Assembly (NCBI GenBank): GCA_965112155.1
Contig: OZ218103.1
Length of the DNA stretch: 64,000 nucleotides
Origin: Podarcis liolepis
Taxonomy: Eukaryota
Reading direction: 5' to 3' (one strand)
Position 1 is the stretch's first letter. Each line of letters starts with the position of its first letter. Both the position numbers and the translations under genes were made by a program. The notes under the pieces were generated by a model. That model worked only from the letters and a program-made list of their open reading frames with translations. It had not been told where the DNA came from and searched no databases. Of the stretch, positions 2,840 to 59,884 are shown piece after piece.

Positions 2840-8465
<5,626 letters not shown>

Positions 8466-8771
8466 GCCCTTTGCCACCAGCCTGTCTGCCAGCTGCAGAC
8501 TCTGTACATATTTATTTAATGTCTTCTGTTGGCTTGGGATGGAGCTTGGTGTATAAATTTATTCCCGTGATCTTTCCCTGCGAGGCCGTGGAAGAACCTG
8601 ACCAATTGATGTGTGTGTGAGAAAGAATCTGTCCTCCTTTCCTTCCATCCTTTCCTGCTCCACTTCCCCTGAAAGAAGGGGCTGGATGGACCTAGGAGAA
8701 GGAGCCTAGAGTCTTCCAGCCCTTGCACTCTTTGTGGCAACCACTGCCAACAGCAATGCCATGTTCTGTGA

Positions 8772-8777
8772 AATAAA
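8772..8777 (+). terminator. Poly(A) signal of ATP6V0B
   Basis: AATAAA about 310 nt after the stop codon, followed by GT/T-rich sequence. Confidence 0.7.
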
Positions 8778-11700
8778 CTCATCCGTGTCCCAAGTGGTTT
8801 CCCTTCCTTGTGCTGCTGTGCCCCTCCTGCTACCCCGGCTCCTGTTGCCTCTCACAGTCCACATTTTCTGGAACAGCCAGTGGTACTGGCTGAAGATTTG
8901 GCTCTGCGGGCTATGGGAGGTGCCCTCCTAGGCACATCTGTTCCATACTGAAGGGGTGCATAGGAGCTAAAAGTTGTGATTTTTTGAGTTCCCTGAAACT
9001 TCACAAATGATTGGTTAATTAAAATTAATTATGGGAAATGTCTTGTACTGTGATTAATAGTTGCTGTTTCTCTGTGGTGTGCCTGCTGTTCATCAAACTG
9101 CTCAATGCAGGGGTGGGCAAACTTCAGGCTTATCTGATTGTCTTTGTTTCTTTAACTGGAATCCAAAATCTACTAACCAGGGGCAAAATATAGATTATTA
9201 TTTTTTAGAAGGGGTTCCTCTGAGCCCATTTTGAATCCTAGGAATTGGTTTTCAGTACTAGAACGGAGCTTATAGTCCTTTTGCCCAAGTCCTCTCCTGC
9301 GTAACTTTTAACATTTCAGCGGCCAAATTTAGATGGGAAAGGTCATTTTGTTATTTCCTTTAGACAACTGATAGTTGAAAAGCCCTGCTGATTGATTGCA
9401 AATCACTCAGAGGTTTGATAGAGCCTGTGAGGTAGGTGCAAAGGCTGTGACTGGCCCAAGGTCACCCAGTGAGCTTCATGACTTGAGTGGGGATTTGAAC
9501 CCTGAAGTTTTAAAGTGTTGTAAACTTTAAGGGGTTTTTTCCTTTATAATGTGGTATAGAAATGAAATTAATCATCATCAACATCATCCCTGAGAAAGAA
9601 AATGAGACCTGGACATTCCATTGTGGCAGCCACAACCTAGGTTTAAATTACCATTTAGCAATTAGCTTATATATCTGAGTTTCTACACTGGACCCCCATG
9701 GATTGGAGGTTCCCTCTCCCAGGATAAAGAGTATTCCTGCTACCTCTTCCCAGGGGTGGGTAGTTTTGCAGTCCTAGGACCATGAAGCATATTAATTTAC
9801 AAAACTGTATTTGTATCCTATATTGGGAGTTGCCAAAGGTAGCTTTCAGTTAAAGCAAAACTTAGCTGAAAATTAGAAGCCAGAGAGTCACATTGCAGAA
9901 GGGGAAACACTTCTTATGGTAGGATGAATCTAAAGATCTTATAGCTTAAGCCCTGAGCAGGATTTGCCATCTGTAATCCAATCCCATGCCAGCCTTACCT
10001 GGTAACTGTAAGGGTGGGAGGAAAGAGCTGGATTCCAGGCAGCAACATTTGTTATTTTCCCTGCAAAGTTTAGATAGTCAAATGGGGGGTGGTGTGGTAT
10101 TGTGATATATTCTTATTTTAAGGAATATATAAAAAAAGAAAACTGATTCTGTTTGTTTGTTATTTCATTATTTACAGCAAGTCTTCACTGTTCTGATTGG
10201 CTCAGTGCTTTTGGAGAACAACAGAGCTGTGCTTATTTTTCTACAGGAACTTAAAAAATTATGTGGCAGGGTGTTTAGTGTCACCTTTTGGGTTCCTTGC
10301 TGGGACAGAGCCCCACCCCGGGAGATTTCCTGAAACACTTTTGACAACTGTATATTTAGCCTCTTTTCCACGTTTCCCACTACTCTGAGTAAAAACACTT
10401 GAATTTACATGTGTGAGCCATTCTGCTGTTTGTTCTGAAGGCAAAGATGTTCCTTTGGGACACTCTCGGCACTTCTCAATGACATAACTGGTGTTCATCT
10501 AAATAAAGCTTTTAAGAACATTGCTAGTGGGGCAAGATCTGACCCATATAAGCTAGAGCAGATGGGGTTGCATGTTCCCTTGCTCTCCATAATTTGATTG
10601 TCAAACTGTAGCTTTATCAGCATGTGGTTATAAAAGTCATCAAAGGATAGAGAACATCATCTTTATGTTGATGATACCCCGATGCTCTCTCATAGGCTGA
10701 CTGAAATGGATTCATTTAGTGTTTAAAAAATGATGTAGGTCAGGTGGTGGAAGAAGCCCTCCAGTAAATGGCTCTGTCAAGGACGTTTCCTTCAGTTCAG
10801 ATCTGTACATGTTTTGATAGCTAGATGTGATGGCTTGTGTAAATTTAGAGGACATAGAGCCTCAAATTTTAGTTCAGCTTGATAACTGACAAGCCTAACA
10901 TCTTGCTGTGGGGCAAAACGGATTTCAAAAGACAAACATTGTTTTGTCTAGTGCCACATACATTCTTTCCTGGTGATGTATTTACAAAATCTTTCCTATT
11001 TAAAACATATAGGACTATAACAATATGTCCAGAATAGCCTTAACACAAACTGGAGTTGCTATAGGTGGGGATGAGGGATTTATTTTCCTAACCTTTAAGC
11101 TGCGCTACAAGACTTACCTGCTTTTGAATGCAGCCCGGTGGTCCCTACACAACATTTCTTAAGCACTGAGATATGTATAACTTCAAGACCTCTTCAAGGT
11201 CTGCATCTCAGTTACTTGTGATGGCTTCGTTTGCCTGCAGTTCATACTCTTAATGTTCTTCTCTTAATGTTCTTCTCATTGTGATTGCAGCTCAGGGGGG
11301 GCTTTTCTTTACATAGATAATAACTCAAAATTTGACCTGTACACGTAACCTCAGGTCCTTGATTTTGCATACCCCACTTCTGTGTATTTAAATACCGTCA
11401 TTGGGTGAGCAGTCAGTATCACAAGATGAATCTTGATCCAAACAAAACACCTACATTCTGATTGTCATATGTGAAATCATAGTAACTGTCACTGTTCTAA
11501 GAAATGGGCTAGTTTGGCTTTATTCTCATTGGAAATATGCTGGAGAAGTTGTGAGGGTTCCTTCAGATCAGGACAGGTTGCTGTTCTGTGGCATGAGTAG
11601 GGCCTGCTACACTGTAGCTCCACATTTCCCCCCTCAAAACATGTTGTGGTTACTGCCTTGAGGTGGCTTATCTTGCAGAGGCATAACCCTGGCAAGCCCA

Positions 11701-14700
11701 TTGCTTTTTAGGAACCTTACACTGGCCTTGCGTGTTTCTGTGCTGCAGATAATTCTCTCTCTTTAATAAATGTGTGCCCTGCCCTGTCTGCTATGTGCCA
11801 GGCTGATGGTAATAAAAGCAGCTTAAAAGAAGAACATATTCCAACTAGCGAGCAATGGAAGTGGCAGCACAATCAAATGCTTGAAAATAAAAACAGCAGC
11901 AAACTACAAAACACTTCAACTGATATTTAAAAGGCTAGGAAAATAAAAGTCTAGGAAATTAAAAGGCTATGTGCGTCACATCAAAAAGGCATTGTAGTTA
12001 GCACTAGGTGTGCTTTCTTGGGAAAGCATTCCAGTGATGTGCTAAAATGGTGAAGGCCCTTTCTGTAGTCCCCACCTGCCGCCTGCTGTGTTTTTTCCTA
12101 CACTGAAATGGTGTTGCCTCCTAGCACTATGTTAGGAGCTGTTGTCCTCAGGAATCTTGCCACACCATTTTTCTGAGGGTGTTTCTTTCCTTAGTGCCAT
12201 GAACTCCTGTGTCTCATGTGGATGACCTCTGAGGCGGTGCAGACTGGGCCTGAGCCTACATAAGGAGTGAAAGTGAAGTCCTCCATTTTTCCTCTCTAGG
12301 AGGCTTAAGTACAATCACACTGCTTTCCTGGCTTAGTGTTGGCTCCCTGGGTGATTCTGCCACATCCCTGCAAATCTGCTGTAAGATGCAGAAAATCCAC
12401 TCACTTTGGATGTTTGTAGAGTGCCCGGCATAAGGAGCCAAGCTGGCTCATCAGACTAATGAGCTGGCAGGGATCCTTGTAGCATCGTGGGTGGGTGTTG
12501 TGGGGAGACTCTTCCAGGATATTTGTATCCTGCCTCCCACTTAATGAGCATGCAAGTTGCTGGGTGTGGTAGGAAGGTAAAGATTACCAGATCGAGGTAC
12601 TAGGCTGGCATGCAAAGCTGTAAAGAAGAGCTGGGGAGCTTGACAGCTCTCACACACAGAGAGAATAATAAACACATGAGCCCCGCAATATTGCACTGGG
12701 ACTGAAGGAGCTCAGATGTGCTTGGGCAAGAATGTTGGCATGGCTTGCAGAGTGCCTGGAAGCACTGAACTCATTAGGTTAGGTTACGTGATAGTTGGAG
12801 GGGAAGGCTGGGTGGGGCTGGGTGGCTGAGAGGGAGGAAAAACAAAAGAAGCTCTTTGTTCAGAACTTACAGGGTTCTCCAAATTCTAGTGAGGAACAGA
12901 CAATACTTCCTGATGATTCTTGAGGGTATTAAGGTGTGGAGATTTTGGAGGCTAGAGTTAATGGCACTGTCTTGGCAACAGCAGAATAGTCCTATTGGCA
13001 GAGGTTATAGTTCCCTGGAGGAAAACGTGTTTTGCATGCAGAATGCCCCAGGTTCAATTATTAGCATTTCCAACTGAAAAGATACCAAGTGGAGAAAAAG
13101 AAGAACCTTGGACTGCCACTGCTAAGATAGACAGCGCTGTCTATTGTGAGTTCTTCCCAAGGCCTACCTGTGTAGTTGCAAGAACAGCCATTCTGAAGTG
13201 TAACATACAAACAAGTGGCATTTATTTGCTTGTCACAGCTCAAAAATGTTCAGAGAGGGTGATGTTCCATCAGCCCTGCCATAGTTTACCCAAGTTAAAG
13301 TTCAATCCTATTTATTAAAGAAAAGGATACAGAGATGAAATAAAAAGAAATATGCATTTGTATTAAATATATGTAACTATGACAAGTTCATCGTTCAAAT
13401 TTCCTGGGCGCCTCACCACTGTTAACATGTAGCATGTCTGCCAAACCATATTCTCATTTAATGAGCTCCTTCTCTCCTAGAATGAAGAAGGCTCGGTTCA
13501 TTTCACAGTTACCTGGAAATGTATCCCAAAAGCATTCTATAGTACAGCTGGAAAGAGAAACTTTGGAATGAAGGAGCCACAAATTGAACTGAACTGGTGG
13601 GGTGGGGGGCGGCGGCAGACAGACAGACCAAGACAGAGAACATTTGAATGGTCCATGCCAGGTAGGAAGGTGACAGTGACCTAGCAGACACAGGTTGGAT
13701 AACAGTCTCCTAAACATATGGACATTTTGGGAAACCCTAAGCAAGTTAATACCTTGCTATAGCCAATGAGTTACATGTTATGTATGCTTTATTTTTATTT
13801 ATTTTGCATATTTTGATTACTGATGTAGTGCTGGAAATGAAGAGCCCAAATCTCTGGTGTTAGGCACATCTATACCCTACCAAATTCCATGGGTCTGATT
13901 ATGCACCGCCTTATCCAAGTGATAGCCCAAAGTTCTTACTAATACAGAGCTTGCTTCAGGGAGAGGCAACTGCCACTTGCTGGGTTCTGTTCTACTCCAG
14001 CATGCCTAGAAGTGTGACTTCTGTGTGCCGCTTCTGTGGGCAGCATTGGCATCACCCTATCATACCTTCGGCAGCCTGAATTTCCCTTGCATCTCCACTT
14101 CATTTCCAAGTTGCCTAACCAAGCACCAACATGGTGACAGCCACATTTTACATTTGTGGCTATATAACCCTGCTGAGAGGCGGGTCCTGTGAAGCCACAT
14201 TTAGTGGAAACATTCAGTTAACACTGTCCTGGGGCCTCAGCAGATGTGCTTATAAACTTGCCACCTGACCATTTATGTGCCAAATTCAGAGAAGAGTGGA
14301 GAGGCATCAGGAAATGGAAGGACCTTTGCCTTTGCTTTTGCAGTACCCTAGACTTGAAAGGAATCTTAAAAGTGAGATTTATTTATTTTTAATTCTAGAG
14401 AGCTGCAGATTGGAAGGAGGCCCAAACTTCCTTGTTTGTTGCATTTCACCAGTTGGGCTCAGGCTCCCTGATAGTTTTGGTTACCCTAAGTAACACCATA
14501 TTCTAGCTTAAAACATGGCGGGCAGGACTAGTAAGTGGCCTATGATGAACCACAGTGCCACAGAAAATGGGTCAGGGTGGCGAGCTCTGTGGAAGGGACA
14601 GATGGGCCACCACCCTATCTTGCATGTCAAAAACTCACAACCACAGAAAACATTAATTTTGGAATACCAACTAAATGCTCCTTTTTTTGATGTGGCAACC

Positions 14701-15219
14701 CAACTCCTCCTGTTCGGTGTACCTTTGTAAGAGTGGGGCCTAGATTTCTGCGTGCCTGGACCCTGCGTACCTGGGAGCCCTGCTGCTAAGTTCAAAAGTG
14801 AGAAAAAGGAGTGGGCTATTTAGAAGGGAGGGAGATGCATTCTGTATGCAGTCAAACCAGTTCCCTTGTTGCATCTTCACATGCTCCAGAGCCCACGACT
14901 GAAAACGTGTGTGTCCCATGGAGCTGAGCCCACAACGTTTAATATATGCGATTCTATTTATTTTTTTTGCAATATGGTGTGTACAGTTGACATTATGGGA
15001 AAATATCATGGCGACGAACAGCATAAAATCAACAATAACATGAGATTCACAAAACAAGTACGAAATACATCACAGATCGGCAGAGGAGGTCAATACATCG
15101 CCGGTTCACCCCTCAGGTGAGCATCATCACCACTGGGTGATGAGATTCATGCCTTGGCTGGAGTGCGTGTGTGATGAATGGGTACTCCCCACCCCACCCC
15201 CTAGGATCTTCTCCTCTGA

Positions 15220-23340: not shown

Positions 23341-26300
23341 ATGAGCAGATTGCTGGTGGGAGTGACCCTGGAGAGGATCTGCAAAGCTGTGCTGCTCTTG
23401 TGTTTACTGCACTTCCTCATCATCATGATCCTCTACTTTGATGTCTACGCCCAGCGCCTGGACTTTTTCAGCCGCTTCAATATGCGCAACTCCTCCCGCA
23501 CTCTGCCCTACGTCAACGTCTCTCGGCCTAACGGGACCGCTGGGCCTCTGGGCCCTGAGCTCCTGGCCCCGAGTGTGAAGTCCGTCAGTATGAACAGCAC
23601 TGTCACCGAGAAGCCCTTACCACCTTGCCCAGAGATGCCTCCTGGCCTAGGTAAGATTACAGATGAGCTCTGTCTGCCTCATGCCGTGTCCTACAGAAGG
23701 CCCTTTAGTGGGGAAACTGTATTGCAGTTATTGGGTTTATTTGTGCCCTGCTTGCCACCTGCTGTTTCCCTGTCAATGCAAATATGTCAAGTGGCTTTGG
23801 CTCCTGATAATAGGAACTAGAAGATCTAGGAATCTGCAGAACAGGCATGGTATTGCAAATCATAGGCTCCAATAGCCTCCACCATTGGAGCCAATCCTGC
23901 AGTGGAAAAGCAGTTGGGAATATGTGGACAGTATTTGTTGAAAGCTGGCAAACTGAATAGTGTTCTTAGTATATTTACAGTGATCAGATAGCGGACTTAT
24001 TATTTCCTTTTTTGCCATGGCAACTCCTTGTCTCTTTCCCAGCCCCACTGTACCTAGCTGGTGCCTTTCTGCAAGTGGGCTACAAGTAATTGGGGAAAGG
24101 GCTCAGCTTCTGCACAGACATGGCTTAGTAGGGGCTACAAGGGTTAGCTCCTTCTTATGCTGATCTCTTCGAATGAATGCATGAAGTAGACCAGCTTTCA
24201 CTCACCTGATGCTCTCCAGATGTATTGGACTACAACATGGCTGCTGCTGCTGAAACTTGTAGCCCAAAAACATCAGGAGAGCACCTGGTTGGTGAAGACC
24301 AAAGTAGACCATCTCCTCACCCTAGGGGGTAAAACATTTAAGGCATAGAGAACTTAATACCCTTATTCCTGACAGGTGGATAAAGAGTTGAAGCACAAGC
24401 TTTGGTATTGATATTTAACTGGGGCTAAAACTTTTATTAAACAATGCAATCTGCAACGAGCAACAACCTTTCCTGTTAACTCTGAATCACTTAGCTGGGT
24501 ATTCGAGTTAACTCTGCTTTGACTGTTTGCTGTCTCTATGCTTGATACATGTTTCGGTTTTTAGGTTTCTTTGCTGATTTTTTTCTGGGCAGTGCCCCGC
24601 CAACTTGGCTAGTGAAAGGGACATGAGCTGTTTGTGTAAGTCAAGAGGCCGTGGCTGATGCATAGATAATGGAGTCCTTTCTCCTGCAGTGGGCCGGCTC
24701 CTTATCGAGTTCAGCACTCCCATGAGCATGGAGCGGGTGCAACGGGAAAACCCAGATGTGCGGGAGGGCGGCAAGTATTCTCCCCCAGACTGTGTGCCTC
24801 GCCAGAAGGTGGCCATCCTCATTCCGTTCCGGCACCGGGAGCACCACCTCAAGTACTGGCTGCACTACCTGCACCCGATTCTACGGCGCCAGAAGGTGTC
24901 TTACGGCATCTATATAATTAACCAGGTGCGTAGAAAATGACAATGTGGGGACAGTGGTGCAGTTGGGTCATTGAGCATTCTGGACTGAATGGTCTCATGG
25001 ATATCTCCTTCAGATGGTAATGTGCATTACTTCAAAATATGGTGTTCCAGCCCTGCTGTCCTCCAAAGCAGAAGGAGTAGGGCCTGGATATCTGACCCAA
25101 AGTTCTGTCCTAATGGCACCACTGATGTGGAAGAGAGCAAGATGGCTGGTTTTAGAACATAGTGCCACCCGGTTCCCTTGAGAGGAACCTGATTAGGGAA
25201 AGCGGTATGTTAGTTTTCATGAATATATGCCTCTCTGTTCTGATTGGAAGCAAAGGCTTCCTGCTTTATGGGGGAAGCAAAGTGTGGGCCTTACAATGCA
25301 CCATGAACTTTGCACCTATGGTAAGTGTGGAATGTGATGTAGATGCTTCTCACTTGCTTCTCGTTTAAAAAAATCAGGCCTGCTCTCTGACATGACGATA
25401 AACCTGAAATACAGTTGATGGGACTTTGCAAGATCTATAAAGGGAGATAGAACAGTTCTAGGAAAAAAATAGAATGTTATTCACAATGAAATATAACAAG
25501 AGCCAGTGTGGTGTAGTGGTTAAGAGCGGTAGACTCGTAATCTGGGGAACCGGGTTCGCGTCTCCGCTCCTCCACATGCAGCTGCTGGGTGACCTTGGGC
25601 CAGTCACACTTCTCTGAAGTCTCTCAGCCCCACTCACCTCACAGAGTGTTTGTTGTGGGGGAGGAAGTGAAAGGAGATTGTTAGCCGCTTTGAGACTCCT
25701 TCGGGTAGTGATAAAGCGGGATATCAAATCCAAACTCCTCCTCCTCAAGAGAGAGGGCGGCCAGCTGCATCAGGTAAGAAAGAGTAAGAGGGTCATGGCA
25801 GTTGATGTGACCCCGCCCTTCATTATCTTTCCATACAGTTTGGTGAAGACACCTTTAACCGAGCTAAGCTGTTGAATGTGGGCTTCCTAGAAGCCCTTCG
25901 AGATGATGAGAGCTATGACTGCTTCATCTTCAGCGACGTTGACCTGGTGCCCATGGATGACCGGAATCTCTATCGCTGTTATGACCAACCCCGGCACTTT
26001 GCTGTTGCCATGGATAAGTTTGGCTTCCGGTGAGTTTGTGCACTTTGATCTTTTTTGAGATGCCAGTGGCCCCTTGAAATTGTTCAGAGTGTCAGAGGCA
26101 AAATGGAATGGGGAATATATGACTTTATTGCACACATATGTGCTCTCATTCTGTGTTGGCTTGGACCTTGTGGGGACCTGCAAGCTCTGAAATGTGTTTC
26201 TTATCTAGATTGCAGTACAGGAACCTCCCCCATTCTTAAGACTACCATGTCACATTTCTTCATAATTTGCAGGGTTTTTGTACTTAAAAGTGGGGATATA

Positions 26301-29300
26301 CAACAGCTTTGGATGAATCCCCAGCCAAAGCAGGGTGCTTTGCAGGGATTCTGGGATGGTCCGAGACAAAGTGGAACCTCTTCAGGGATCCAGAGACAAA
26401 GTGGGGATTTCCCAAAGTGCCTCATGGCACCGTGACAACTCTGACAATTGTCTGCTGAAAGCAAAACTAATGTAGCTAACTTTAGTGTATAAGGAAAGCA
26501 GAAGGGGTGTGGAATGGCTGAAGTAGAAAAGTAGAACAAATGCCAGGGTAATGGGAGGGGGGGGGATTCTGCTGTGACTGACAGGTCAAGCTTGTAACCA
26601 GAGGGAATGAGTTCACCTGGAGTCTTCAACCCCAGTGCTTTGTGGGGAGGAAATGAAATCCCTTTTAGTTCTGTTCCCTGAACCCCAAGATCAACTTTAA
26701 AAGTCCCTAGTTCACAAAAATTGAACCAATTTGTCTGCCATTGGCAAGTTTCATACCTAGGGAAACTTCTTTCATGTTTGCTTTCCGAACAATTGCCCTC
26801 AAAAGACATGGGAAGTTTAAGTGGACACTTTTTACCCATCCCCAAACTGTGAAGGCTGTCCTTGTGGGAAAACCAATGAAGCTATCGTTCAGAAATTTGA
26901 CAGGATTCATCTTTCTTGGAGACTCTGATGCCTGCAAATTTCATCCAATAGTGGGGGAGGGGGAAAGGTTTCCTTAGAAAAATAACCATCAAATTTCAAA
27001 GGTACCTGACAGAAAAAATCCCCACCCTGGAATTATTTGGCTGGCTGAATCTGCTGTGGAGCGGCTAATGTGCCTGCAAATTTTATCCACTGTAAAAAGG
27101 GGGAAAGGTATAGCTTAAAAAACAACAACAATCCAATAGTGAACGAGGGGAAATGAAATCTTGTTTTTCCCCAACTCAGAAGCACTTGGGACTTAGGCAT
27201 GTTGTTTTCTGAAGTACTGACTCAAGGGCCAAACTGAATCTTGTTTGGTGCACACCCCTAATTTAAACTTTGCTGCCTCTTATATGACCAGATGAAATGC
27301 TCCAGGGAAGTCCTTGTGATACTACATTATGGAATGGGCGCTTGCAAAACCTATATGAAGGTGATGTAAACAAGCAGACAGGATCCCCACGTGAATGTTC
27401 TGTGTTGTCTATATTCTTACCTGCCAAACATGGCAAAAGGAGATGGAGGAGGTACAGTGTGTATAAAATGGAATCCTGCATTCCCGCTAAGGAGAAGGGA
27501 AATGGGAAGGATTTAGGAGAGACCTGATGCAGTGGGAGCAATGGGTTGCCATCACATGGCTGATTTGGAAACTGGGATTTAGACTGTGTCAGGTGTAGCT
27601 TGGACCACCCAGGTTCTGTGCTCCTGAACCCATTCGTGGCTTGACTGATTCCCATCTCTCCTGCTTGTCCTCTGCAGGCTGCCATACTCTGGCTACTTCG
27701 GAGGTGTCTCTGGCCTGAGCAAGACACAGTTTCTGAAGATCAATGGCTTCCCTAACGAGTACTGGGGCTGGGGTGGGGAAGATGACGACATCTTTAACCG
27801 GTGCGTGAGAGGCTGGGCCAAGCCTAGCCAGAACTTGTTCTCTGCAAGTTGGTTGTAGTAGCCATGTAGTCTGTTTTTCCATGTGGTGTCTCCTGGGAAT
27901 GTGCTGAGTGGCAGGGAACAGCATTCTCTTCTGGGGTGGGGTAGCTGTGCAAATGGCAGGTGGCAATATGCAACACCTGCCTTTTCTATAACAATGCTCC
28001 CAAATCTGAGAGAGGAGGACATAGGCAGGTAGGTATTCCACAGCACATAACAATCAGGGCCAAATAGCAGGCCTGGGGAGCCAATACTCTGAAAGCCAGA
28101 AGGGGTTGGGGGTGCTGAGGACTGGAGGGTGAGGACTAACTCCTGCTTTATTTAGAGTTTGCCCCCGACCTGTCTGCTGATCTTTGAGCTGCACTTTTTC
28201 TTTGCACAGGATCTCGCTTAATGGCATGAAAGTGTCACGTCCTGATGCCCGCATTGGGCGCTACCGCATGATCAAGCACGAGCGTGACCGACACAATGAG
28301 CCCAATCCCCAGCGGTGAGAAAGACAATGTGCTTGCTAGCTCCCTACCTAGTCCATTGCAAGCTACATAAGGAGATGGAAAGCTCCCACAAAATTTCTGC
28401 ACCATTTTCCAGGGCACATAATAGCTTTCCATCCTGATTTCCAATGGAAAATAATCTTCCAGAAGCCTCTTCCCTTTTATAGCATACTGCTCTACACCTC
28501 GAGGGACGCGGGTGGCTCTGTGGGTTAAACTACAAAGCCTAGGACTTGCCGATCAGAAGGTTGGCGGTTCAAATCCCCGCGACGGGGTGAGCTCCCGTTG
28601 CTCGGTCCCTGCTCCTGCCAACCTAGCAGTTCGAAAGCACGTCAAAGTGCAAGTAGATGAATAGGTACCGCTCCGGCGGGAAGGTAAACGGCGTTTCCAT
28701 GCACTGCTCTGGTTCGCCAGAAGCGGCTTAGTCATGCTGGCCACATGACCCGGAAGCTGTACACTGGCTCCCTCGGCCAATAAAGCGAGATGAGCGCCGC
28801 AACCCCAGCGTCGGCCACGACTGGACCTAATGGTCAGGGGTCCCTTTACCTTACCTTTACTCTACACCTCATGAGGAGAGAGGGGCCACATTTGTTTGCC
28901 TCCCTGTAGAATGACCATGAGACAAACCAAGATAGCCTACAAGTCCTTAGCCTTCCCCCAGAGAGTGTTTTCTATTACTGCGTGTGCGTTCCTCTCTTTC
29001 TGACCTACTCCCCGTTTTAATTCCACTCTCTGCCTCTTACTTCTAAGAGACACAGACATGAATCAGAGTCCCAACCATGGACCAGGTGTGTTTGGTTAAA
29101 TCTATGTTCTGCTAGTTTTAGGCAAGGAAAGAGAAAGAGACTCCTGTCCTGTGCCCTACCATTTATTGTCTGGAACCAGAGAAAAGCCACAGCTGGCATG
29201 GTTTCAGGGCAATACACTAAACCGTATTTCATGAGACCCTGACATTCCACTTGAGAGGGTTGTGTGGTGGTAGTAATCACCTATCATGAGAACTAAATGC

Positions 29301-30016: not shown

Positions 30017-31405
30017 CTCTTTGCTGCCTGGCTCTGCCCATGGCCCCATGCATGAGGAGCTGTGCGGATCCCAGCCCTGACTGGTTCAGAGGACTGTGTC
30101 CTGGCTTGGAGGAGCTGTCTGCCTCCTTTGTGGGGATGCGGGAAAGGCCAAGACTACACCTTCGCCTTGCCCCAGCCTTTGGCTGAAGCCCATCTCCTGA
30201 TCACTAGTCAGTTCTCCACAGTGCCCTTCACAGGTTGGGGAGGAAGTGTGAGTGTGTCATGGTGCCTGGCGCAGCGCTTAGGGGTCCTGGGCACAGCCAA
30301 GCCCCACTCCTGGCTGGAAGGCACTGAGAGCAGAGAAACCTTGTGCAGGTTCTTGAACCTCCCTATCCTCTCCCAGAACTTTTCACAGAGCGGCATCCCT
30401 TAAGGATCCCAGAAGTACAGTACAGGTAGTTGTTTTCCTTTCCTCTCAGTGTGCAAGAGTGCCGTTTGAGCCTGCCTTCCAGGGGGTGGCCTGGCCTTAC
30501 GACAAATGCCAGCTCGCAAGGTGTCCAGGTGGTTCACTCGTGCCCAGCTGAGGAGAAGCTCTTCCAAAGGAGAAGCTCTCATGGGCCTGGCCACTTGGCC
30601 ACTGCCCACCTCCATTCATGGCTTGGTGCTGCCCCCCTGCTGGTCCCTGGGTGTCACTTCTGGCTCCAGTAACACAGGGGCGTTTTATACAAAACCCTCA
30701 TTAGAATACTTGAGTGCTTCCTGGGTTAGTGTGACAGGTAGCCTGTCTGTCAAGGGACGACAGGTCATTCTTCCTAGCAGTGTTTGCTCGTCTGTCTGTG
30801 AATGGGGAATATTGGTTGGGCAGTGTGTGCTTCACTTCTCAGCAAGGATGGAATCAAAATGGCATGGTTCGGCCTACTCTCTGGTGTGGGCTGGCTTCTC
30901 TTTTTTACAGGCACCGATAGGCCAATGGCCATGGCTACAGAACAGAGGAAGGTGAAGTTGGCTTCTTGCTGCCTGTCCCCTACCTCTCACCTCCAACCCA
31001 CTTACCCCATACCAACCCTCACTCACTCACCAATCAACCTTCCCGCCATCTGCCAGGTAACCTGCCGTTGACCACTCATCGTGCCCTCTTTGTCAAGCTA
31101 CCATCTGCCACCACCTGAGGCCAGGCCCCTGGGTCCGACCGTCTGCTCATGACACATGGTGGCCGTGTGCCTAATTCCTGGAGCTAGGAAGCTGCTGGTG
31201 TCCCTCATCTCTGGTTATGGTGCCTGGCAGGTAGAATCTCCTGCGCTGGTCCACTTTGGGATGGCAGCTGGGCCAGGCTTGAAGCCAGGCACCAGTGTGT
31301 TGCGCAGCCCAGGTGTTGGTGACTTTTGTACATTTGAATGTTTTGATCCCTTTTCAAGCCTATGGTGAATGCAGCACTGGTCACTACGATCAGACTTTTG
31401 TATTC

Positions 31406-31411
31406 AATAAA
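31406..31411 (+). terminator. Poly(A) signal of B4GALT2
   Basis: AATAAA about 1.4 kb after the stop, with upstream TGTA elements. Confidence 0.65.
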
Positions 31412-31686
31412 GTTTCAAAACTTGGGAGACTCCTTGCCTATGGGATTCAGGTGGGGTCTGTGGATAGGGGCAACGCTGCAGGTTTATGCAATCTGCAGCC
31501 TCCCCTCCTTGTGCTCATCTCGGCAAGGTACAAAATGAAGAATTAAATTCGTTTCCAAATGAATGGCACCTCATTGTGCTTCCCCAACAAGTTTGTTTAA
31601 AGCAGGGACTGGGTTTTCTGGCCCAGGAAACTCTGGACATAGTTACTCAGCCCAGAAGACAAGAGAGAACTATTCTACAAGGTTCT

Positions 31687-31692
31687 TTTATT
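31687..31692 (-). terminator. Poly(A) signal of the VWC2-like gene
   Basis: Plus-strand TTTATT (AATAAA on minus) about 470 nt past the stop at 32161. Confidence 0.6.
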
Positions 31693-32160
31693 GATGCTCA
31701 CACACAGAGAAAAACTGTTAAATAGTAGCAAAAGATGCTATGTTTAGTTGAAGCTGGAGTGGGAATGTGATGGTGGTTGAGGGGTGATTCCCTAAATCAT
31801 ATGGGGAACCTCTGGCTCTCGAGATGTGGCTAAATTATTCCTAACCATTAGCCATGCTGGCTACAGCTGATGGGAGCTGGGAGTCCAACTATATCTGAAT
31901 GGCCACAGGTTGCCCACCCATCCTAAATAAAACGGGCTTTCTCATATGAGCTACTCCCCTGCGTAATAACTAGAGACATTGTCAAGGGAAAGGGTGTAGA
32001 TCTGGAAAGGGGGCTGCGACTGGCAATTGCTTATGTGTATGGTTGAAGGAGTTGGGCCAGGGCTGGGTGTAAGGGCACACTAGGGCTTGTCTGGATAAGC
32101 AGAAGCCTTGCAGGTGCTGAAGAATGGCTGGCCCAGGAATTGTTTGGTGTTTGGAGCAGC

Positions 32161-32345
32161 TCAGGTGTGATGTGCACCTGTAGCCCGGCATCCCCTTAGC
32201 CGCTCACATTTAGCTAAGCGGTTTCCTTCCCAGTAACCGGCATCCTGGCCATCATGACAGCGGCAACGGGTGCAGGGCCCCACCCATATGCTCTCCCCAG
32301 CAGGAATTACGCGTCGCTGGCTCCCATCCACGTAGCAGTTGGGCC
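32161..32345 (-). CDS. VWC2-like gene coding exon 3
   Basis: cag|(G)PNCYVDGSQRRVIPAGESIWVGPCTRCRCHDGQDAGYWEGNRLAKCERLRGCRATGAHHT*. Confidence 0.9.
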
Positions 32346-35300
32346 CTGTGGAGAGACATGTCCATGCATTAGAGTCTGCCATTGTTTGCAGAAGTCTCAT
32401 CATGAATCTTAGAAGCAGAAAGGGCAAGCAGTTTAAGAGTACATGTGTAGGTGGGGGCAACCCAGCCAGATGGGCGGGGTATAAATAATAAAATTATTAT
32501 TATAATTACTCCAGCCTTGCACCCCTATCCTCTACTGGGAGCTCATCTCATGCACAGGTTCTGTGCTAGATGCTGCTTTTGTACCAGGAGGACATTCTTC
32601 ATTTTGGGGGGAGCCCCTCTTCTAACACTAGGGCTAAACACCTGCCAAATCCTTCAAGATGAGGTGGGGGCTACCAGGTGTCCCCCCATCATTTCTAAGC
32701 AGGAAGCTTCCTGTTCAGTTAAGCAAGCTTGTGTCTGGTCAGCTTGGCTCAATTCCTCTCACTTCCCTGCTCCATTAGGACAGGGGCCCTGAACAGCGAG
32801 GGAGACAAAATTCTCTTCCCCTTCTGGACAGCTTGAAGTGGAACATTTGTCCCTTGCTGTGAAGGTGTGTCTTTCTCACCATCCGCACAGGTGGGGCAGC
32901 AGTGGCCCTTCTCGTAGACTGGATTGACGCAGGGCGGAGGGGCGCAGTCAGCCACTAGGCAACGAGCGATGCCATCTAGGTCACAGGTACACTGCTCACA
33001 CTCTGAGGGCTGTGAGAGACAAATATTGGTCAATAGAGCAAGGCAGCTTTACGTGGACAGCACACGGTTATGAAGATGATGATGCAGCACCTCCAGAACT
33101 ATTTTGCATCAGTGGTGCAGAAGCTTATTCTTTTCTGAGAATTGCATTCCCTTGGGAATCTGTTCAGAATTGCATGCCAGTGGTGTGCTGGTCCAGAGTC
33201 AAAGTGGGTAGGGCACCTCCTCTGCTACCCTGTTTCCCTCCCCCTTTTCCTCCTAATAAAATTAGGCTGAGAGAAATAGGTTACCCATCCATCCCACACC
33301 ACCATGTTACAGAATTGACTGGATTTTGCAGTTCCAGAATGAATTAGTCATGTCTTCTGTCTGTAACTTGCAAAAAGAGATATGCGTATGTAAGCAGGTG
33401 GAAAACTCATGCCTCAGATACTTAATTGGATTAGGCTCCTGGCTGCATCTTTGCTTACCTGTATCTGTGCTTTAAGTATCAGGGGAAGGAGTGATCACAA
33501 AAGAAATATAAGGCCCATCATCTTCCTTTTTTTGTAATGTGTGAAGAAGCATTCCAAACTGAATTGCATAGCCATGGCAGTACTGGAATTATACCATCAG
33601 ATGGCACTATCAACCAAGAATTGATAGATAATGAGGGAGAAAGAGCTTCTGTCCCAATCTCCCTTCACTTTGTGTATCTTGTCAGCTCTGGCCAACTCAA
33701 GATTACTCTCAAATAATCATGCGGCTGGTCACTGGGGAAACTGACTGGTCATAAAATGTTGAATAGAGAAAACTCTGAGTGAGTGAGAGATTGTCCCCAG
33801 TAGCGCAGAACCATCAGGGATCCCAATATGCTAAAAAGGCCCATGAATGTGTTTTGGAACCCATTACCCAATCAAGCTCCTCCTTAAAATATCCAGCAAA
33901 GGAGACTGAAGTCATTTTCAGCACCTCACCTCTCATTCACCTTCTCACTTGCAAAACATGAGGCTAATTCTAGCCAAGCCACATGCTTTTGTTCTCTGCC
34001 CTAAGGGGAAAGTTCCAAGATTCTACCTTCTGTCAAATTCCCTCCCTCCTGAACTAATAGGTTGGTTGTCTGATTTCACACCTTCAGGGTGGGTGATGAT
34101 AAAGACTGGTCTCCACTGAAGTTCAAGTGGTTGCAGATAAAAACATTGGTCACTTGCTCTAGATCACTCGTCACAATACTTTAAAATAACAATGATGGAA
34201 GATGACATCAACATTTAACACCAAAAATCACATCTTAATGATATAATTGTCCATGATCATCTTTATAACTCCAGGGAAGGAGATTGCACAACTTCACTGG
34301 CAAGTTGATATCTTGTTCGTACTACAAACCTACAGTACAAAGGAAAGTGTTTACCCTTCCTAATGACAGAACTTTTCTCTCGCTAGATCTATAGCACATG
34401 TCTTGCTTGTAAGCAAATGCAAGATAACTTAGTTCCAGGAAGTGTTGGGAAGCAGCCCTATATTACTGTATCTACAACCCAGATGTTATGGACCTAGAGC
34501 AAAATCTGGCAATCCCTAGTAAAGAACTGAGAAGCTTTGGCTGAGCAAAGTATTTTAGGGCAAGTTAGGCCCCAGCTGAATGGTTCTGGATAATCAAAAG
34601 CTTGCTTGCTATTTTATGATATTTTGGTTGGCCATAATAAAGTTATTATTTGGGGGGAAAATATGGCTCAATATGGCTTTGCAGAAAGCATTTACCGTAT
34701 TTTTCGCTCTATAGGACGCACTTCCCCCCTTCAAATATGAAGGGGAAATGTGTGTGCGTACTATGGAGCGAAGACGCCATAGCCCCGCGACCCTCTCCCG
34801 GCTGGTAGGAGCCTCTTTAGGAGCCTCTTCAGCCGCGACCCTCTCTGGGCTGGAGAGGTGGCGCGCGACGATGGCAGGAGAGCGCGTGCGGGGCTAAAGA
34901 AGCCATAGAAGCTTTCTGCTGCTCCCCGACTTCTTTGGGGCTGGTGGTGGGCTTCCCCCCGCCAGCCCCAAAGAGCAGGTTGAAAGGAACCTGAAGCCTG
35001 GAGAGCGAGAGGGGTCAGTGCGCACCAACCCCTCTCGCTCTCCAGGCTTCCAAGGTAGCCGCCTGAACGCAACTTAAACGGCACCTTGTTTTAGAGGGGG
35101 GAAACAAGAGGGGAAAAATTCTCTCCCTCTCTGCGCAGTGCCTCCTACCGCTTCGCTGATGGGGCGCTGGGCAGAGAGGGGGAGATTTTTTTTTTCTTGT
35201 TCTCCCCCCTCTAAAACAAGGTGCGTCCTATTGTCTGGTGCGTCCTATGGTGCGAAAAGTATGGTACTTTCTGTGTACCTTTCAACAGAATTTTGTGTTT

Positions 35301-36545
35301 GGGTAAGTGGGACAGGCCAAGAGATAAGTCATCACACAATAATTTGATGTTTAGGTAACGGACAATTCACCTAGGAAGAACCCCACTGCCCATTCTTTGA
35401 CTATATGTAGCAACTGGTCCTTTCTTCATCAATACACTTATTTTTTGCAAACACTCAATTCATGCTATCCAAAGAGGCATGGAGCCCAGGAATGGAGGGC
35501 TTTGATCTTCCACCTGCAGCCTCAGGGCTAGAATTTGACTCCCTTCGGCTAGTGCAGGCTTAGTGCCAAAAATACTCCTTTTCCCACCCACCCTCAATTG
35601 TCCAAGTCAGCCATGCTAGAGATTGTTTGGTCTGACTCAAGTCCTAAAATAAACTACACACATTTTTGGCAGCAACAGACAATAGCCAGAAGCAAGGTGC
35701 TGAACTGGTCAATGTCAGGCCTAAGAAATGGATGAAAATGCAATTCAGTTAGTCAAAGGATGCTCAGCTAGGTACTACAGCCAATAAAATTGCCTTCTGA
35801 ATTATCAAAAAGCTTTGGTTTTATGGGACCATCTTAAGAGCACCTCCAGCTTCATAGAGCACTTTTGATTTGGTGCTTCTCACCCACTTTGGAAAAGTTT
35901 TGTTTGTATTTTCTTTTGCTTCAGCCAGTAATGAACAAACCATAAAGAGATAGCCATTCCTGCTTCCAGTCTCTTACTCTCCTGCCTAGGCCTCCCTTTC
36001 AGAACAAGATTTAAGAAACAGAAGTGACCGCTTGCGATTCTTAGACAGTGCCTTTTTCAAGAGCATTCGCTTTTTCTCCTGCTTTTGAATATCCTCACTT
36101 TGCCCATCCATCACCTATCCATCCCTGCCCACCTCGCTCTAGATTCCTTCTCATGCCATCCCCACTATGCCTAATTCTCCCGTAAATGCCTTACCTGGAA
36201 ATGCTGCCCCAGCTCATACACTTGTCCACGGTGCTCACAGCCAACCCTTTCGCAGCGTGGGCAGCAGTCGCTGGGGTAGTGGCTGACGTGAATGCAGGCA
36301 GGTGGCAGAGCGGTGCAGTCTGTGCGGGCGCAGGCGGGCCCCTCCGCTGTGCACTCGCACTGGGTGCAGTGGTCACTGTCCAGGAAATACCACTCCCCAA
36401 CGTAGTACAGGCTCCCGTTGGCATCGCACGTGGTCACTGGCCCTGCCAGTCCTGGGATGGGCACCAGAGTCAGCAGCAGCAGTGCTAAGCTCAGCTGTGC
36501 CAACGGAAAGGGCATCGCTGAACTCGAGGGACAGATGCCGGGCAT
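32161..36545 (-). CDS. Secreted von Willebrand factor C domain protein of the Brorin (VWC2/VWC2L) family, divergent paralogue (221 aa from ATG 36545; 211 aa from ATG 36515)
   Basis: Exons 36545-36195, 33009-32880, 32345-32161, all GT-AG and in frame (666 nt). Signal peptide, two 10-Cys VWC domains ending CCPRC and CCPTC, and a C-terminal GPNC...VIPAG...C..C.C tail. Confidence 0.9.
32880..33009 (-). CDS. VWC2-like gene coding exon 2 (130 nt)
   Basis: cag|PSECEQCTCDLDGIARCLVADCAPPPCVNPVYEKGHCCPTCAD(G)|gtgag. Confidence 0.9.
34695..35264. mobile_element. Non-autonomous Tc1/mariner (pogo/Tigger-like) element in intron 1 of the VWC2-like gene
   Basis: Imperfect TIRs CCGTATTTTTCGCTCTATAGGACGCAC / GTGCGTCCTATGGTGCGAAAAGTATGG, flanked by TA dinucleotides. 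Confidence 0.75.
36195..36545 (-). CDS. VWC2-like gene coding exon 1 (signal peptide, VWC1, start of VWC2)
   Basis: MPFPLAQLSLALLLLTLVPIPGLAGPVTTCDANGSLYYVGEWYFLDSDHCTQCECTAEGPACARTDC...CCPRCERVGCEHRGQVYELGQHFQ|gtaag. Confidence 0.9.
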
Positions 36546-36549
36546 GGGA

Positions 36550-37500
36550 GTTGGCGAGAGGGAGGAGCAGAGCAGCAGCAGCAGCAGTAGGGAAGCGAAG
36601 CGGAGGAGAGCTGGCGGGGAAAGTGGGCATCCAGTCCGCCCCAACGCCGCCCGCGGGGTCCCGCCGGGAGGTTGCCTGCTGAAGCTGCGGCTAAGAACCG
36701 CCCTGGCGTGCCTCGGCCTTTGTGCAGCCGCCGCCCGGCCCGGCCCGCCCCTTCTTGCAACCCGAGCCCGCCCAGGGGCACAGCACCCCCTCCCCAACGG
36801 AGCGGGCGGGACCGGGGCGGTGGGAGGAACCTGGCCCCCTATCTGCACCTCAGGAAAAGCCTGCTAAGACAAGTCCACTGTGCTCCCTCTCCAGACCCCT
36901 CGAACACTCATCCGGGCAGCGAAAGTTGCGTCTCCCCAGTTCCCAGTCTCCGCGGCCTCCAAAACACGCGCGGCGCTGGATCTCTCCCTCCCCCCCCCCC
37001 ATCTTAATCCTAGGAACATTAATAGGCAAAGAAAGAAGCTTCTCAATACTGTACTGTTGCCAAAGCGTAAAGCCAGTGGGACCCCTCCTGGATGAAAACT
37101 GGCCGACGTGTGGCTTCTCTTTACCTCCGATTGCTTGGGTGCAAGCGCGGGCGCGCCAAGAGCTTCAACGCGCACGCTTCCTTCCCCCGGGACGCCCGTC
37201 TCCACGCTCGACCGACATCCTGTCTGCCTCGTGGGCACGGCTCCTTTAAGAGGCGAGGCTTCAGAGGAACGCGGCGGGGCGTTACCATGGAGACGGCGAG
37301 TTTATATTCCAGAGAGTTAGAGGGTGGAGGGGGCTCGGATAGGGCAAGACGCCTGGCCCTCCGCCCCTCCGCCCGGTGTCGCAGGTGAGGGCTACCGCAG
37401 AGTTATGTCCGTGAGTCCGTAGGGAGTGAGGAAGTGTGGGGAGAGTAAAAGGTCTGGGGCGGAAGTGGGCTCGGTGGGCCGAGACCTAGGTGAGTTAAGC
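36550..37500. promoter_or_regulatory. CpG-island bidirectional promoter (VWC2-like on -, CCDC24 on +); probable non-coding CCDC24 exon 1 ending at 37489 (CTAG|GTGAGT)
   Basis: CpG-rich. X-box-like GTTACCATGGAGAC at 37281-37294, GC box and ETS site GGGGCGGAAGTG at 37456-37467, and a consensus donor at 37490. Confidence 0.7.
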
Positions 37501-39116: not shown

Positions 39117-42100
39117 ATGTTGCCCTTGCCTGGTACATCTGGGGAATCCTTGCAGTCCGTACCATCACTCTGGACAATGATAGAGGAACAATTAGCACCC
39201 AGTGAGAGGCTTGAGGCGAAAGCTATCTTGGGTCATGGCCTTGTGGAACGGAGCTTGGAACTTCATGCTGAGGTTAAGTACCGAAATACTGGCTCTCCTA
39301 TTCAAAATGATTCACAAAAGAGCAGAACAAACCAACCAACCAACCAACCACCCCTCTTACTACACAATTTAGAAGTGGCTGGTGACAAAGGGATATCTGA
39401 ATAAAGCATAAAATCTAGGTCTCATCAGCTAAAGAGGCAGCACTAAATTTGTAAGGGGATTTGACTGATGAAAGGGCCCGCCTTTCATGTCTATAGATTG
39501 AGTGGAGTGGACTGAGTGCTAAAATTGAGCAGCGCTAAGGGAGGGCTTATAAATTGTATTAAGCCCCCTTCCACTGAGCACTGGCCACTAGTTTTGGCAT
39601 ACATGCATTTTCATATAGAGTAGCATTCATGTGTGTATGGAAAAAACCTCTGGTTTGCCACTTACATCTGCTTTGAGTGCTGTTTAATTTCAGTGAAAGG
39701 AAAGCATATCTGAGAAGGCAATTCAAGGAGGGCATAAAATATTGCAACCCCCCCCCCCCCTGTTTGACAAGGTCCCCATTTGCCAGCTCCCAGCTCAGCT
39801 GGTTCCTAATGCTTGGCCAGAGCCCCTAATCCATGCTATTCCAGGCCCTTTGTTCTCCTCCAGCCATTCATGCCCTTTCTTTATTCAGCATGGTCCTGAC
39901 TGCAGCTGAGAAGAACAGTAAACATCCCAGACGCTTTTCACATGGTAATTGCCTTACCTCCTCCTGAAACCAGAAGAGCAAGCACAGCACACCCTGACAA
40001 GATGGCACCTTTCTCTATCACTTCTTCATGTTAGAGCTTTGCTTGAGATCCAGCCCCCCCCCATTGTGGCCAGTGACCCCCTCCCCAGCCTTTATGGGGT
40101 CTCTCACCTGGCTGTCTATTACATCTTCATCACAAGCCTGATAAATGTGGCCCAGGTACTGCCTGTCTCCCTGCTGTGTTCTTGTATGTGTCTCTGCTCC
40201 CCTCCCCAATTGGATATCTGAGAGGCCGCCCAGGGAAGCAGCTGTACCATAACGTTCCTCTTGTGGATGTGTGGGGCCAGAAAGGGAGTTCTGGCGCTCG
40301 CTTGCCTTACAAATATCCTGCAGATATTTTTGCGGCATGACCTTGACTTTCCTCATGGGAGGAGGGAGAGAATGATTGTGGGTGGGCTGTCTGCAGCTTT
40401 GCACCTTTTATGGAGTGTACAGACGGCAACAATGCAGTGCCCTCTTGCCAGCTACATTGGAATGACAGTGTCCTGGCTAGTGTTCTTATCTTCTGCAGGC
40501 AACTTTGCCCACTTTCTGCAAAAGAGTTGTTTTTTTAAAACCTAAAAACTTCACTCTTAATCCTAAAATACTCTTCACATAAACTAATAGCCTCATAGAC
40601 TGTTCCCAGTCTTTGGGCAGATGCAACGTTTTTCTGAATTTAGTGTACTCTCACACACATTTATCACATTTGAAGCATCTTTTATTTCCTTGATGCGTGA
40701 CATACTTCTGAAAAGTTGTCAGTTCCCTGACTGTGGCCTTTATGAAATGTAATTGTCTACCATCAGGTGAGTAACTAAACCATGGCTAGGTATTGATTTT
40801 TTTTCTTGCAGGCAGGCACCTGGCTTGATTTCCAGGTGTGCAGAATAGCAATACTGGGAGTGGGAGTGCAACTTGTATTTTTAGGTTGTGTCGGTGCTTC
40901 ATCATTTGGGGAGGTGGAGGGTGGGGGAAAGATTACTTTGAGAAAGTTACTGCAGTTTGTGCCAATGTGCACATGTGTGAATTTCTGCATGTGGCAATGC
41001 ACTGTCCCTAATGCAGTCCAACCCCTTCCCTATTTACAGGTGCGGACACTGTTGGAATTCCATCAGGAGTTGCAGTCAGGCCGCCTTGGAGTGGAGCAAA
41101 GCCCACTGCAAGCAGATGACAGCTGGGCCTTGCTGGCAGCTCCCCCCAACCTCAAGGAGCTGGTGAGGGAGGAGATCCGCCTTCTTCTAATTGGCCTACA
41201 GCAGAAGGCATCGCAGGAGGGCAGGTACTGGAGATTGGAAGAGAAGGGACTTGAGAGAATTAAGGGCTGAGTTAAGGGGGAGCAGGTAGTAGGGATAGAA
41301 GAAAAGCAAGCAGACTATATTAAGACCTGAAGCCTATTTGATATAAGAATGAGCCCATTAGTTTCCAACTGATGTGCCTGGTGGTATTTATGTGTGCGGA
41401 ATGGGTGAGTTTTACATCATCTTTTGGCCAAAGCAGTCTAGATTGAGGAAGCCATAACTATTTGTTACGAGAGGCTTAGAGTTTCATGGGACAAATCAGT
41501 TAGGAGGCTAGACAATAACTTGATTGTCTCTCTTAACAAGAACAGGATGGGGGAAACCTCTGATTCCACTCAGATATAAATAAGTCCAGTGCCACCTAGT
41601 GACTAAACTATATATTTACACTAGTGACACAGTATTCTTTCTCCCTTTGCCTTCTAAGGGTGACTGTTCCAGAAATGCTTACTAGGAAATATCAGCTCCA
41701 ATGCAATTTAATTGGCAGTTCCAGTATAGTTTCAACATGATTGCCACTCAGATGGCCAATGTCCAGCAAAAATAACCTGTCCCAAACACATGTTTGCACC
41801 GTACACCTCCATCTGTAACTTGCGCTCCCCATTCAAGTGCAGCTTGTCAGTTTGTGTGTCTCTCTAGTCTTTTTTATCTGTAGAATTAATTCTAGCCTTA
41901 CATTCCCATTCTTTGGGTCTCAATCATATAGCCTTTGTCATTTCCACATAGCTTCCTTACATCATGCAGGAATCACATTGCTGAGCGCCTCTATCAAGAA
42001 TGCCAGTCCTGCTAGTGCATTTGTTTTGTATGGTGTGTTCAGTCCATAGCCTGAGGCTGGGATTATGTCTCACCTCCAAGTTCAAAGTGAGCATTCATCC

Positions 42101-51051: not shown

Positions 51052-59884
<8,833 letters not shown>

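Follow-up and report, generated by a model that had tools for sequence, protein, structure and literature searches.

We analyzed a 64,000-nucleotide (nt) stretch of DNA from the lizard Podarcis liolepis (contig OZ218103.1 of assembly GCA_965112155.1), hereafter called the window. On its minus strand, between exons of B4GALT and CCDC24, lies a third gene of the Brorin family, alongside VWC2 (Brorin) and VWC2L (Brorin-like). Reading of the sequence gave three GT–AG exons (Table 1) with a reading frame that is uninterrupted across all of them, encoding a product of 211 or 221 amino acids (aa). Overall, the locus is best explained, and in our view very probably, as the lizard orthologue of the ancient jawed-vertebrate gene zgc:113531, which would represent a third Brorin lineage beside VWC2 and VWC2L.

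Transcription was assessed using contigs of four public runs mapped on 31000–36900; the runs came from four studies and two organisms (three runs and one run). The contigs of all four runs contained a joint 33009→36195, skipping 3185 nt, as well as a joint 32344/5→32879/80, skipping 534 nt. Both joints had CT..AC ends on the plus strand, equivalent to GT..AG on the minus strand, and fell exactly at the predicted junctions, bearing out the exon structure proposed in a first-pass annotation of the window made from its sequence. Separate contigs spanned the introns, indicating that both unspliced and spliced forms are present. At the 3′ side, contigs of runs X1, X13, and X9 began at 31671–31684 and continued into exon 3, and the transcript end at 31671 was located 16 nt past the previously noted poly(A) signal (AATAAA, 31692–31687, minus strand). 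Upstream, the contigs reached beyond 36900, and they therefore do not define the transcription start. A CpG-rich region, described earlier as the gene's own promoter, was indeed detected at 36500–37500 (G+C, 55–72%; CpG observed/expected, 0.56–1.17); however, since it is placed between the Brorin-family gene and CCDC24, it is probably a bidirectional promoter shared with CCDC24 rather than a private one. Together, these results show transcription from a CpG-rich region head-to-head with CCDC24, joining of the three exons, and polyadenylation about 490 nt past the stop codon.

The two product lengths correspond to two in-frame start codons. The upstream ATG at 36545 adds 10 residues (221 aa vs 211 aa), and the second ATG at 36515 has a better context (gcgATGc) and is the conserved start in the gecko and snake orthologues, whose N-termini read M-[PR]-[FL]-P followed by LSLALLL. 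A triplet run of the CTG/CAG type (GCTGCTGCTGCTGCT, minus strand) occupies 36546–36600, directly upstream of the first ATG. The lengths of this run and of the 5′ flank differ in the contigs of the relatives, with 3-nt and 6-nt insertions or deletions and, in organism B, a 14-nt deletion at 36546. Because of these differences near 36546, the upstream ATG and its 10 added residues are probably not conserved.

The product begins with a putative signal peptide and has hardly any pro-region; one sequon is present, and two VWC (chordin-type) domains of 10 Cys each are followed by a C-terminal domain with 6 Cys. In agreement with the first-pass annotation, the 211-aa form contains 26 Cys, and its single N-x-S/T sequon is NGS at residues 33–35. 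The stretch LSLALLLLTLVPIPGLAG, located ahead of the first Cys, is hydrophobic and keeps its position in the orthologues. VWC1 contains C-T-Q-C-E-C, with no DYRGKGC motif before the first Cys, and exon 3 displays the motif layout GPNC...VIPAG...C-x2-C-x-C...YWEGNR. Pfam and database searches were run per exon, the exons being concatenated only for Cys counts, codon effects, and one row in the trees. Against a cut-off of 27 bits, exon 1 matched VWC2L_1st (PF23333; E = 1.8e-14, 53.8 bits), exon 2 matched VWC2L_2nd (PF23334; E = 4.7e-10, 40 bits), and exon 3 matched VWC2L_C (PF23331; E = 2.1e-17, 63.2 bits). These matches, with one domain per exon, exceed chance and assign the gene by sequence to the Brorin family, with the VWC2L-like layout that had been recognized earlier.

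The intron positions point the same way. In the window gene, the introns lie between F[QK] and PS.CE (just after the start of VWC domain 2) and inside the Gly codon before PNC, with the last base of exon 2 providing the first base of this codon. In many species, the points at which VWC2L isoforms part lie exactly after ...EEFK and ...CKNG, bracketing 43 codons plus one base. The 130-nt exon before GPNC, which the first-pass annotation had given as a trait of VWC2 and VWC2L, is thus borne out, directly for exon 2 of the window gene and indirectly for VWC2L. Both intron positions and the 130-nt middle exon would therefore be common to the window gene and VWC2L, as implied by the isoform break points rather than by VWC2L genomic DNA. 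A retrocopy or processed pseudogene was ruled out because the two introns occupy family-conserved positions.

Next to the gene itself, we examined its distribution among 5.8 billion proteins. A word search was made with exon 1 inside a 225-aa open reading frame, so that full-length proteins were eligible; it returned 65 proteins of 58–94% identity, ranging from chondrichthyans to squamates. A profile built from nine orthologues of tetrapods and lungfish returned 100 proteins at ≤1e-20. Orthologues were found in squamates (Gekko, Phrynocephalus, Candoia, Thamnophis, Pituophis, and Pseudonaja), turtles (Emys, Gopherus, Chelonoidis, Chrysemys, and Platysternon), frogs, caecilians, lungfish, sturgeon, gar, many teleosts (some named zgc:113531), sharks, and rays. 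No mammalian, bird, or crocodilian protein was among the matches of either the word or the profile search of these 5.8 billion proteins. In contrast, a VWC2L search returned mammals, birds, turtles, and squamates at 95–100% identity. The gene has thus apparently been lost from mammals, and perhaps from archosaurs as well. Of the earlier proposal that it was kept in squamates and lost in mammals, the second half agrees with both searches, whereas the first does not describe a squamate peculiarity: with orthologues from sharks to lizards, the gene is, as judged from its sequence relatives, a general gnathostome gene and not a squamate relic.

The orthologues are well conserved. The gecko protein displayed 60–82% full-length identity to its orthologues, including 60–69% to the fish, shark, and amphibian proteins, and the window protein was 88% identical to the agamid orthologue P0005. 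Across 20 orthologues from shark to lizard, every Cys column without gaps was invariant; the gene models of gar and seahorse are incomplete and lack the final four Cys. The block CRCHDGQDAGYWEGNR-AKC, like DGQDAGYWEGNR, was almost invariant in these proteins. Comparison of the window with the transcript contigs of its relatives listed five differences in exons, all of them synonymous. The gene is probably under strong purifying selection.

Orthologues of the window gene are already present in public annotation, as 'VWC2-like' in RefSeq, an automatic and misleading name, and under the zebrafish-derived placeholder zgc:113531. The gene thus belongs to a known family, as a member that has yet to be characterised, and is not a new kind of gene, and no paper or functional study on the zgc:113531 lineage was found in the literature searched. 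A separate teleost group that was also auto-named 'VWC2-like' (P0132, P0229, and P0228 from Coilia, Chanos, and Engraulis) was sister to Brorin (VWC2; support 97/88) and not to VWC2L, and probably arose by a vwc2 duplication confined to fish. At least three different genes are thus grouped under the automatic name 'VWC2-like'.

The relationship of the window protein to VWC2 and VWC2L was then addressed using a tree (IQ-TREE, LG+C20, 48 rows, 225 columns, Ciona as root), for which a profile search of 1.84 billion representatives and a name look-up supplied teleost Brorin, lamprey, hagfish, and Ciona genes. The window protein and its orthologues formed one clade (clade X; support 95/96), and all VWC2 and VWC2L proteins together with five cyclostome genes formed another clade that excluded X (100/99). 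The VWC2 and VWC2L clades each spanned shark or teleost to mammal without the window protein, and identity between X and VWC2/VWC2L was 35–41%. Distinctness from both known genes, as claimed at first, is accordingly well supported, and we regard it as settled by these sequence comparisons that the X lineage is nested in neither VWC2 nor VWC2L and predates the split between sharks and bony vertebrates. The further claim of a third paralogue of equal rank fared less well, since X is best placed outside VWC2 plus VWC2L.

The spacing of Cys in VWC1 agrees with this placement. C-x-x-C-x-C was found in X, in Ciona, and in another outgroup, whereas C-P-C-x-C was found in every VWC2, VWC2L, and cyclostome protein, making C-x-x-C-x-C the ancestral spacing and C-P-C-x-C a derived one-residue deletion. 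HCTQCEC, which had been read as a sign of divergence, is therefore the ancestral arrangement, as in Ciona. Similarly, DGQDAGYWEGNR, taken for an insert in the first-pass annotation, aligned with EEGTWRVERQ of VWC2 and was only two residues longer; it is a family-wide W-containing loop that seems inserted only against bony-vertebrate VWC2L, in which the loop has been shortened. Most of the features initially called divergent are thus ancestral. Another family member, P0091 (a Logan contig of 341 aa), looks non-vertebrate; it has C-x-x-C-x-C spacing and the motif WAGNRDAQC, which is close to YWEGNR-AKC of the X lineage, and could help to polarise family characters.

Pfam matches and motifs in the window confirmed the location given earlier, between B4GALT and CCDC24 with SLC6A9 nearby (Table 1). 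The B4GALT exons carry the motifs FNRAKLLNVGF, DVDL, and WGWGGEDDD. Contigs of the B4GALT 3′ untranslated region (UTR) on the plus strand stopped at about 31376–31450, and the Brorin-family transcript on the minus strand stopped at about 31671; the two genes are therefore arranged tail-to-tail, about 220–300 nt apart and with no overlap. The gene order of the window matches that of B4GALT2, CCDC24, and SLC6A9 on human 1p34. Human B4GALT2 and CCDC24 are adjacent, and the absence of the gene from the human locus rests on this adjacency and on the protein searches. VWC2 and VWC2L are linked to IKZF genes, VWC2L adjoining IKZF2. The window gene has no IKZF neighbor, the adjoining genes being represented by the B4GALT exons, CCDC24, and the SNF-family transporter.

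Table 1. Features of the Brorin-family gene and its neighbors, in coordinates of the window
Feature	Position	Strand	Remarks
Coding exon 1	36195..36515	minus	107 codons from conserved ATG 36515, phase 0; donor gtaagg at 36194; putative signal peptide, NGS sequon, VWC domain 1, start of VWC domain 2
Intron 1	33010..36194	minus	3185 nt, GT..AG; joint seen in all 4 runs
Coding exon 2	32880..33009	minus	Exactly 130 nt, between ...cacag and gtgaga; remainder of VWC domain 2
Intron 2	32346..32879	minus	534 nt, GT..AG; joint seen in all 4 runs
Coding exon 3	32161..32345	minus	After ...ccacag; C-terminal 6-Cys domain; TGA 32163-32161
3′ UTR	31671..32160	minus	About 490 nt; AATAAA at 31692-31687
5′ UTR and CpG-rich promoter region	36516..37500	unassigned	Between the Brorin-family gene and CCDC24
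B4GALT exon	25806-26021	+	Pfam Glyco_transf_7N, 8.1e-21
B4GALT exon	27679-27801	+	Pfam Glyco_transf_7C, 1.9e-20
CCDC24 exon	40806-41270	+	PF15669, 1.7e-10
SNF-family transporter exon (SLC6A9)	51264-51824	minus	PF00209, 1.6e-12

Both introns contain repeat-like sequence. Intron 1 carries a 574-bp element (34693–35266) whose 29-nt terminal inverted repeats are 86% complementary. With palindromes in its interior and TA at either edge, it looks like a miniature inverted-repeat transposable element (MITE). The element was missing from the intron contigs of all four runs (joint 34692→35265, skipping 572 nt) and is therefore an insertion specific to the genome or lineage of the window; parts of it were highly repeated among the transcriptome contigs. 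In intron 2, a stretch at about 32454–32510 (GGGCAACCCAGCCAGATGGGCGGGGTATAAATAATAAA...ATTATTATTATAAT) displayed a contig depth of 6000–15000 in all four runs, with dozens of loose contig ends on both sides (at 32454/32492), and appears to be the tail of a repeat resembling a short interspersed element that is transcribed and present in very high abundance.

We also considered what the product might do. The agamid orthologue P0005 was modeled with AlphaFold2 using a 47-sequence alignment. The model was all-beta and disulfide-rich, with a mean predicted local distance difference test score of 84.7 and values above 90 across residues 41–190. The best Foldseek match of this model was to the NEL/NELL tandem VWC repeats (E = 1.5e-6), followed by single VWC domains of collagen IIA, CCN3, and Crossveinless-2 (CV2), the last being VWC1 in complex with BMP-2. 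A PDB sequence search with exon 1 gave weak VWC matches only (CV2 at E = 0.6). Among the characterized relatives, Brorin inhibits bone morphogenetic protein (BMP) signaling and is required for zebrafish forebrain development (PMC5407822), and Brorin-like has likewise been described as a neural BMP antagonist that is secreted (Miwa et al. 2009, as cited in PMC5407822 and PMC6502786). Brorin and Brorin-like are among the AMPA-receptor interactants, with an unknown postsynaptic role (PMC6502786), and binding of VWC2L to CD36 was observed in a screen at the cell surface (PMC9578707). By homology to Brorin and Brorin-like, and from the VWC fold, the secreted product of the window gene would comprise about 186 aa and be rich in disulfides. 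It would bind a partner outside the cell, and most likely it would antagonize or modulate BMP ligands; we give about even chances to a secreted tandem-VWC protein that binds BMP-class ligands extracellularly. It may in addition bind proteins at the periphery of AMPA receptors, a possible role that is less supported than BMP binding.

Several points weigh against the proposal of an ancient third Brorin lineage, lost in mammals, that encodes a BMP-binding protein. The absence from mammals, birds, and crocodilians rests on predicted-protein databases and not on genome searches, and the claim is weakened by the fact that the GC-rich exon 1 is missing from several turtle gene models. The four runs are RNA by guess only, and their contigs give neither strand nor expression level nor tissue. 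Many VWC domains do not bind BMPs, and the function of X is deduced by homology at only 35–41% identity to VWC2/VWC2L. Finally, approximately unbiased (AU) tests rejected neither X as sister to VWC2L (p = 0.27) nor X as sister to VWC2 (p = 0.25). Because of this result, the position of X outside VWC2 plus VWC2L is likely, being favored by the sequence data, but not settled.

An ancestral-type lineage is one way to accommodate these data. X would have left the VWC2/VWC2L stem before the vertebrate genome duplications gave rise to those two genes, and its sequence would have stayed nearly frozen for more than 400 million years in sharks, fishes, amphibians, turtles, and squamates, with separate losses in mammals and in archosaurs. 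Its extracellular partner would be conserved, and its role, distinct from the neural ones of Brorin and Brorin-like, would be one that mammals do without or fulfil with a different protein. X does keep the Ciona-like VWC1 spacing and a W-x-G-N-R loop. We hold this full scenario tentatively, at somewhat below an even chance.

The AU tests are also compatible with X being an ohnologue of equal rank from the two rounds of genome duplication (2R), sister to VWC2 or VWC2L, that underwent faster evolution and left the IKZF/Hox paralogon at a later time. The long stem branches, which drew a long-branch warning, and the use of only 225 columns lend some weight to this alternative. Conversely, the maximum-likelihood tree unites VWC2, VWC2L, and the five cyclostome genes without X at high support, and the one-residue deletion in VWC1 is found in exactly that group, with X in the Ciona state. 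Moreover, B4GALT2, CCDC24, and SLC6A9 are not known to be part of the IKZF/Hox paralogy group. We therefore consider an origin as a 2R ohnologue unlikely, and an early, separate X lineage remains the preferred reading of the tree.

A decaying but still transcribed gene, either an incipient unitary pseudogene or non-functional read-through from the bidirectional promoter of CCDC24, would account for the undefined transcription start, with contigs continuing upstream of 36900, and for the transposon inside intron 1. This explanation is very improbable, since the frame is open with 26 of 26 Cys retained, identity to the agamid orthologue is 88%, none of the five listed exon differences to the relatives alters the protein, and the splice sites and poly(A) signal are canonical and in use. 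Still less credible is a squamate VWC2L or VWC2 orthologue that was merely translocated and represents no separate lineage: the three Pfam domains and intron positions are as in VWC2L, but squamates (Anolis, Pantherophis, Varanus, and Sphaerodactylus) possess a canonical VWC2L that is 95–96% identical to the bird protein, which together with the separate clade excludes a translocated VWC2L, while the window protein and its orthologues share only 35–41% identity with VWC2/VWC2L, their clade itself spans sharks to lizards, and fish records list brorin, vwc2l, and zgc:113531 as separate genes.

A third Brorin lineage has consequences for work on the family, which has assumed two genes because mammals have two; the family comprises three lineages. 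The third, very strongly conserved gene is present in most other jawed vertebrates, zebrafish and Xenopus-type models among them, and may buffer the phenotypes of brorin or brorin-like knock-down or knock-out in fish. Where orthology tables transfer the name 'VWC2L' between species, two different genes can become mixed. The interest of the lineage lies in its retention of ancestral VWC1 characters, its strong conservation, and its absence from mammals and apparently archosaurs. It would offer a clean case of an ancient secreted signaling modulator lost in mammals, which zebrafish would allow to be tested directly.

Compared with the known systems, X is closest in organization to VWC2L, with which it shares the three Pfam domains in the same order, the intron positions, the 130-nt middle exon, a length of about 210–230 aa, and a Cys-rich, probably secreted character. 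It differs from VWC2L in sequence (35–41% identity, separate clade) and in the VWC1 spacing (C-x-x-C-x-C rather than C-P-C-x-C), lacks the acidic pro-region and the DDYRGKGC motif that precede the first Cys of VWC2L, and has a C-terminal loop six residues longer than that of bony-vertebrate VWC2L. Its neighbors are B4GALT2 and CCDC24, whereas VWC2L lies next to IKZF2. VWC2 has the same domain architecture as X but belongs to a different clade, at about 38–39% identity, and its N-terminal region before VWC1 comprises about 130–150 aa (P0101 and P0103), compared with about five residues in X. The zgc:113531 and RefSeq 'VWC2-like' proteins of fish, amphibians, turtles, and squamates are orthologues of the window gene and display no difference of substance. 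Finally, the tandem-VWC BMP modulators (Crossveinless-2/BMPER VWC1, chordin, and NELL) have the same fold as X; X is much smaller than these proteins, consisting of two VWC domains and a family-specific C-terminal domain, and may share their BMP binding.

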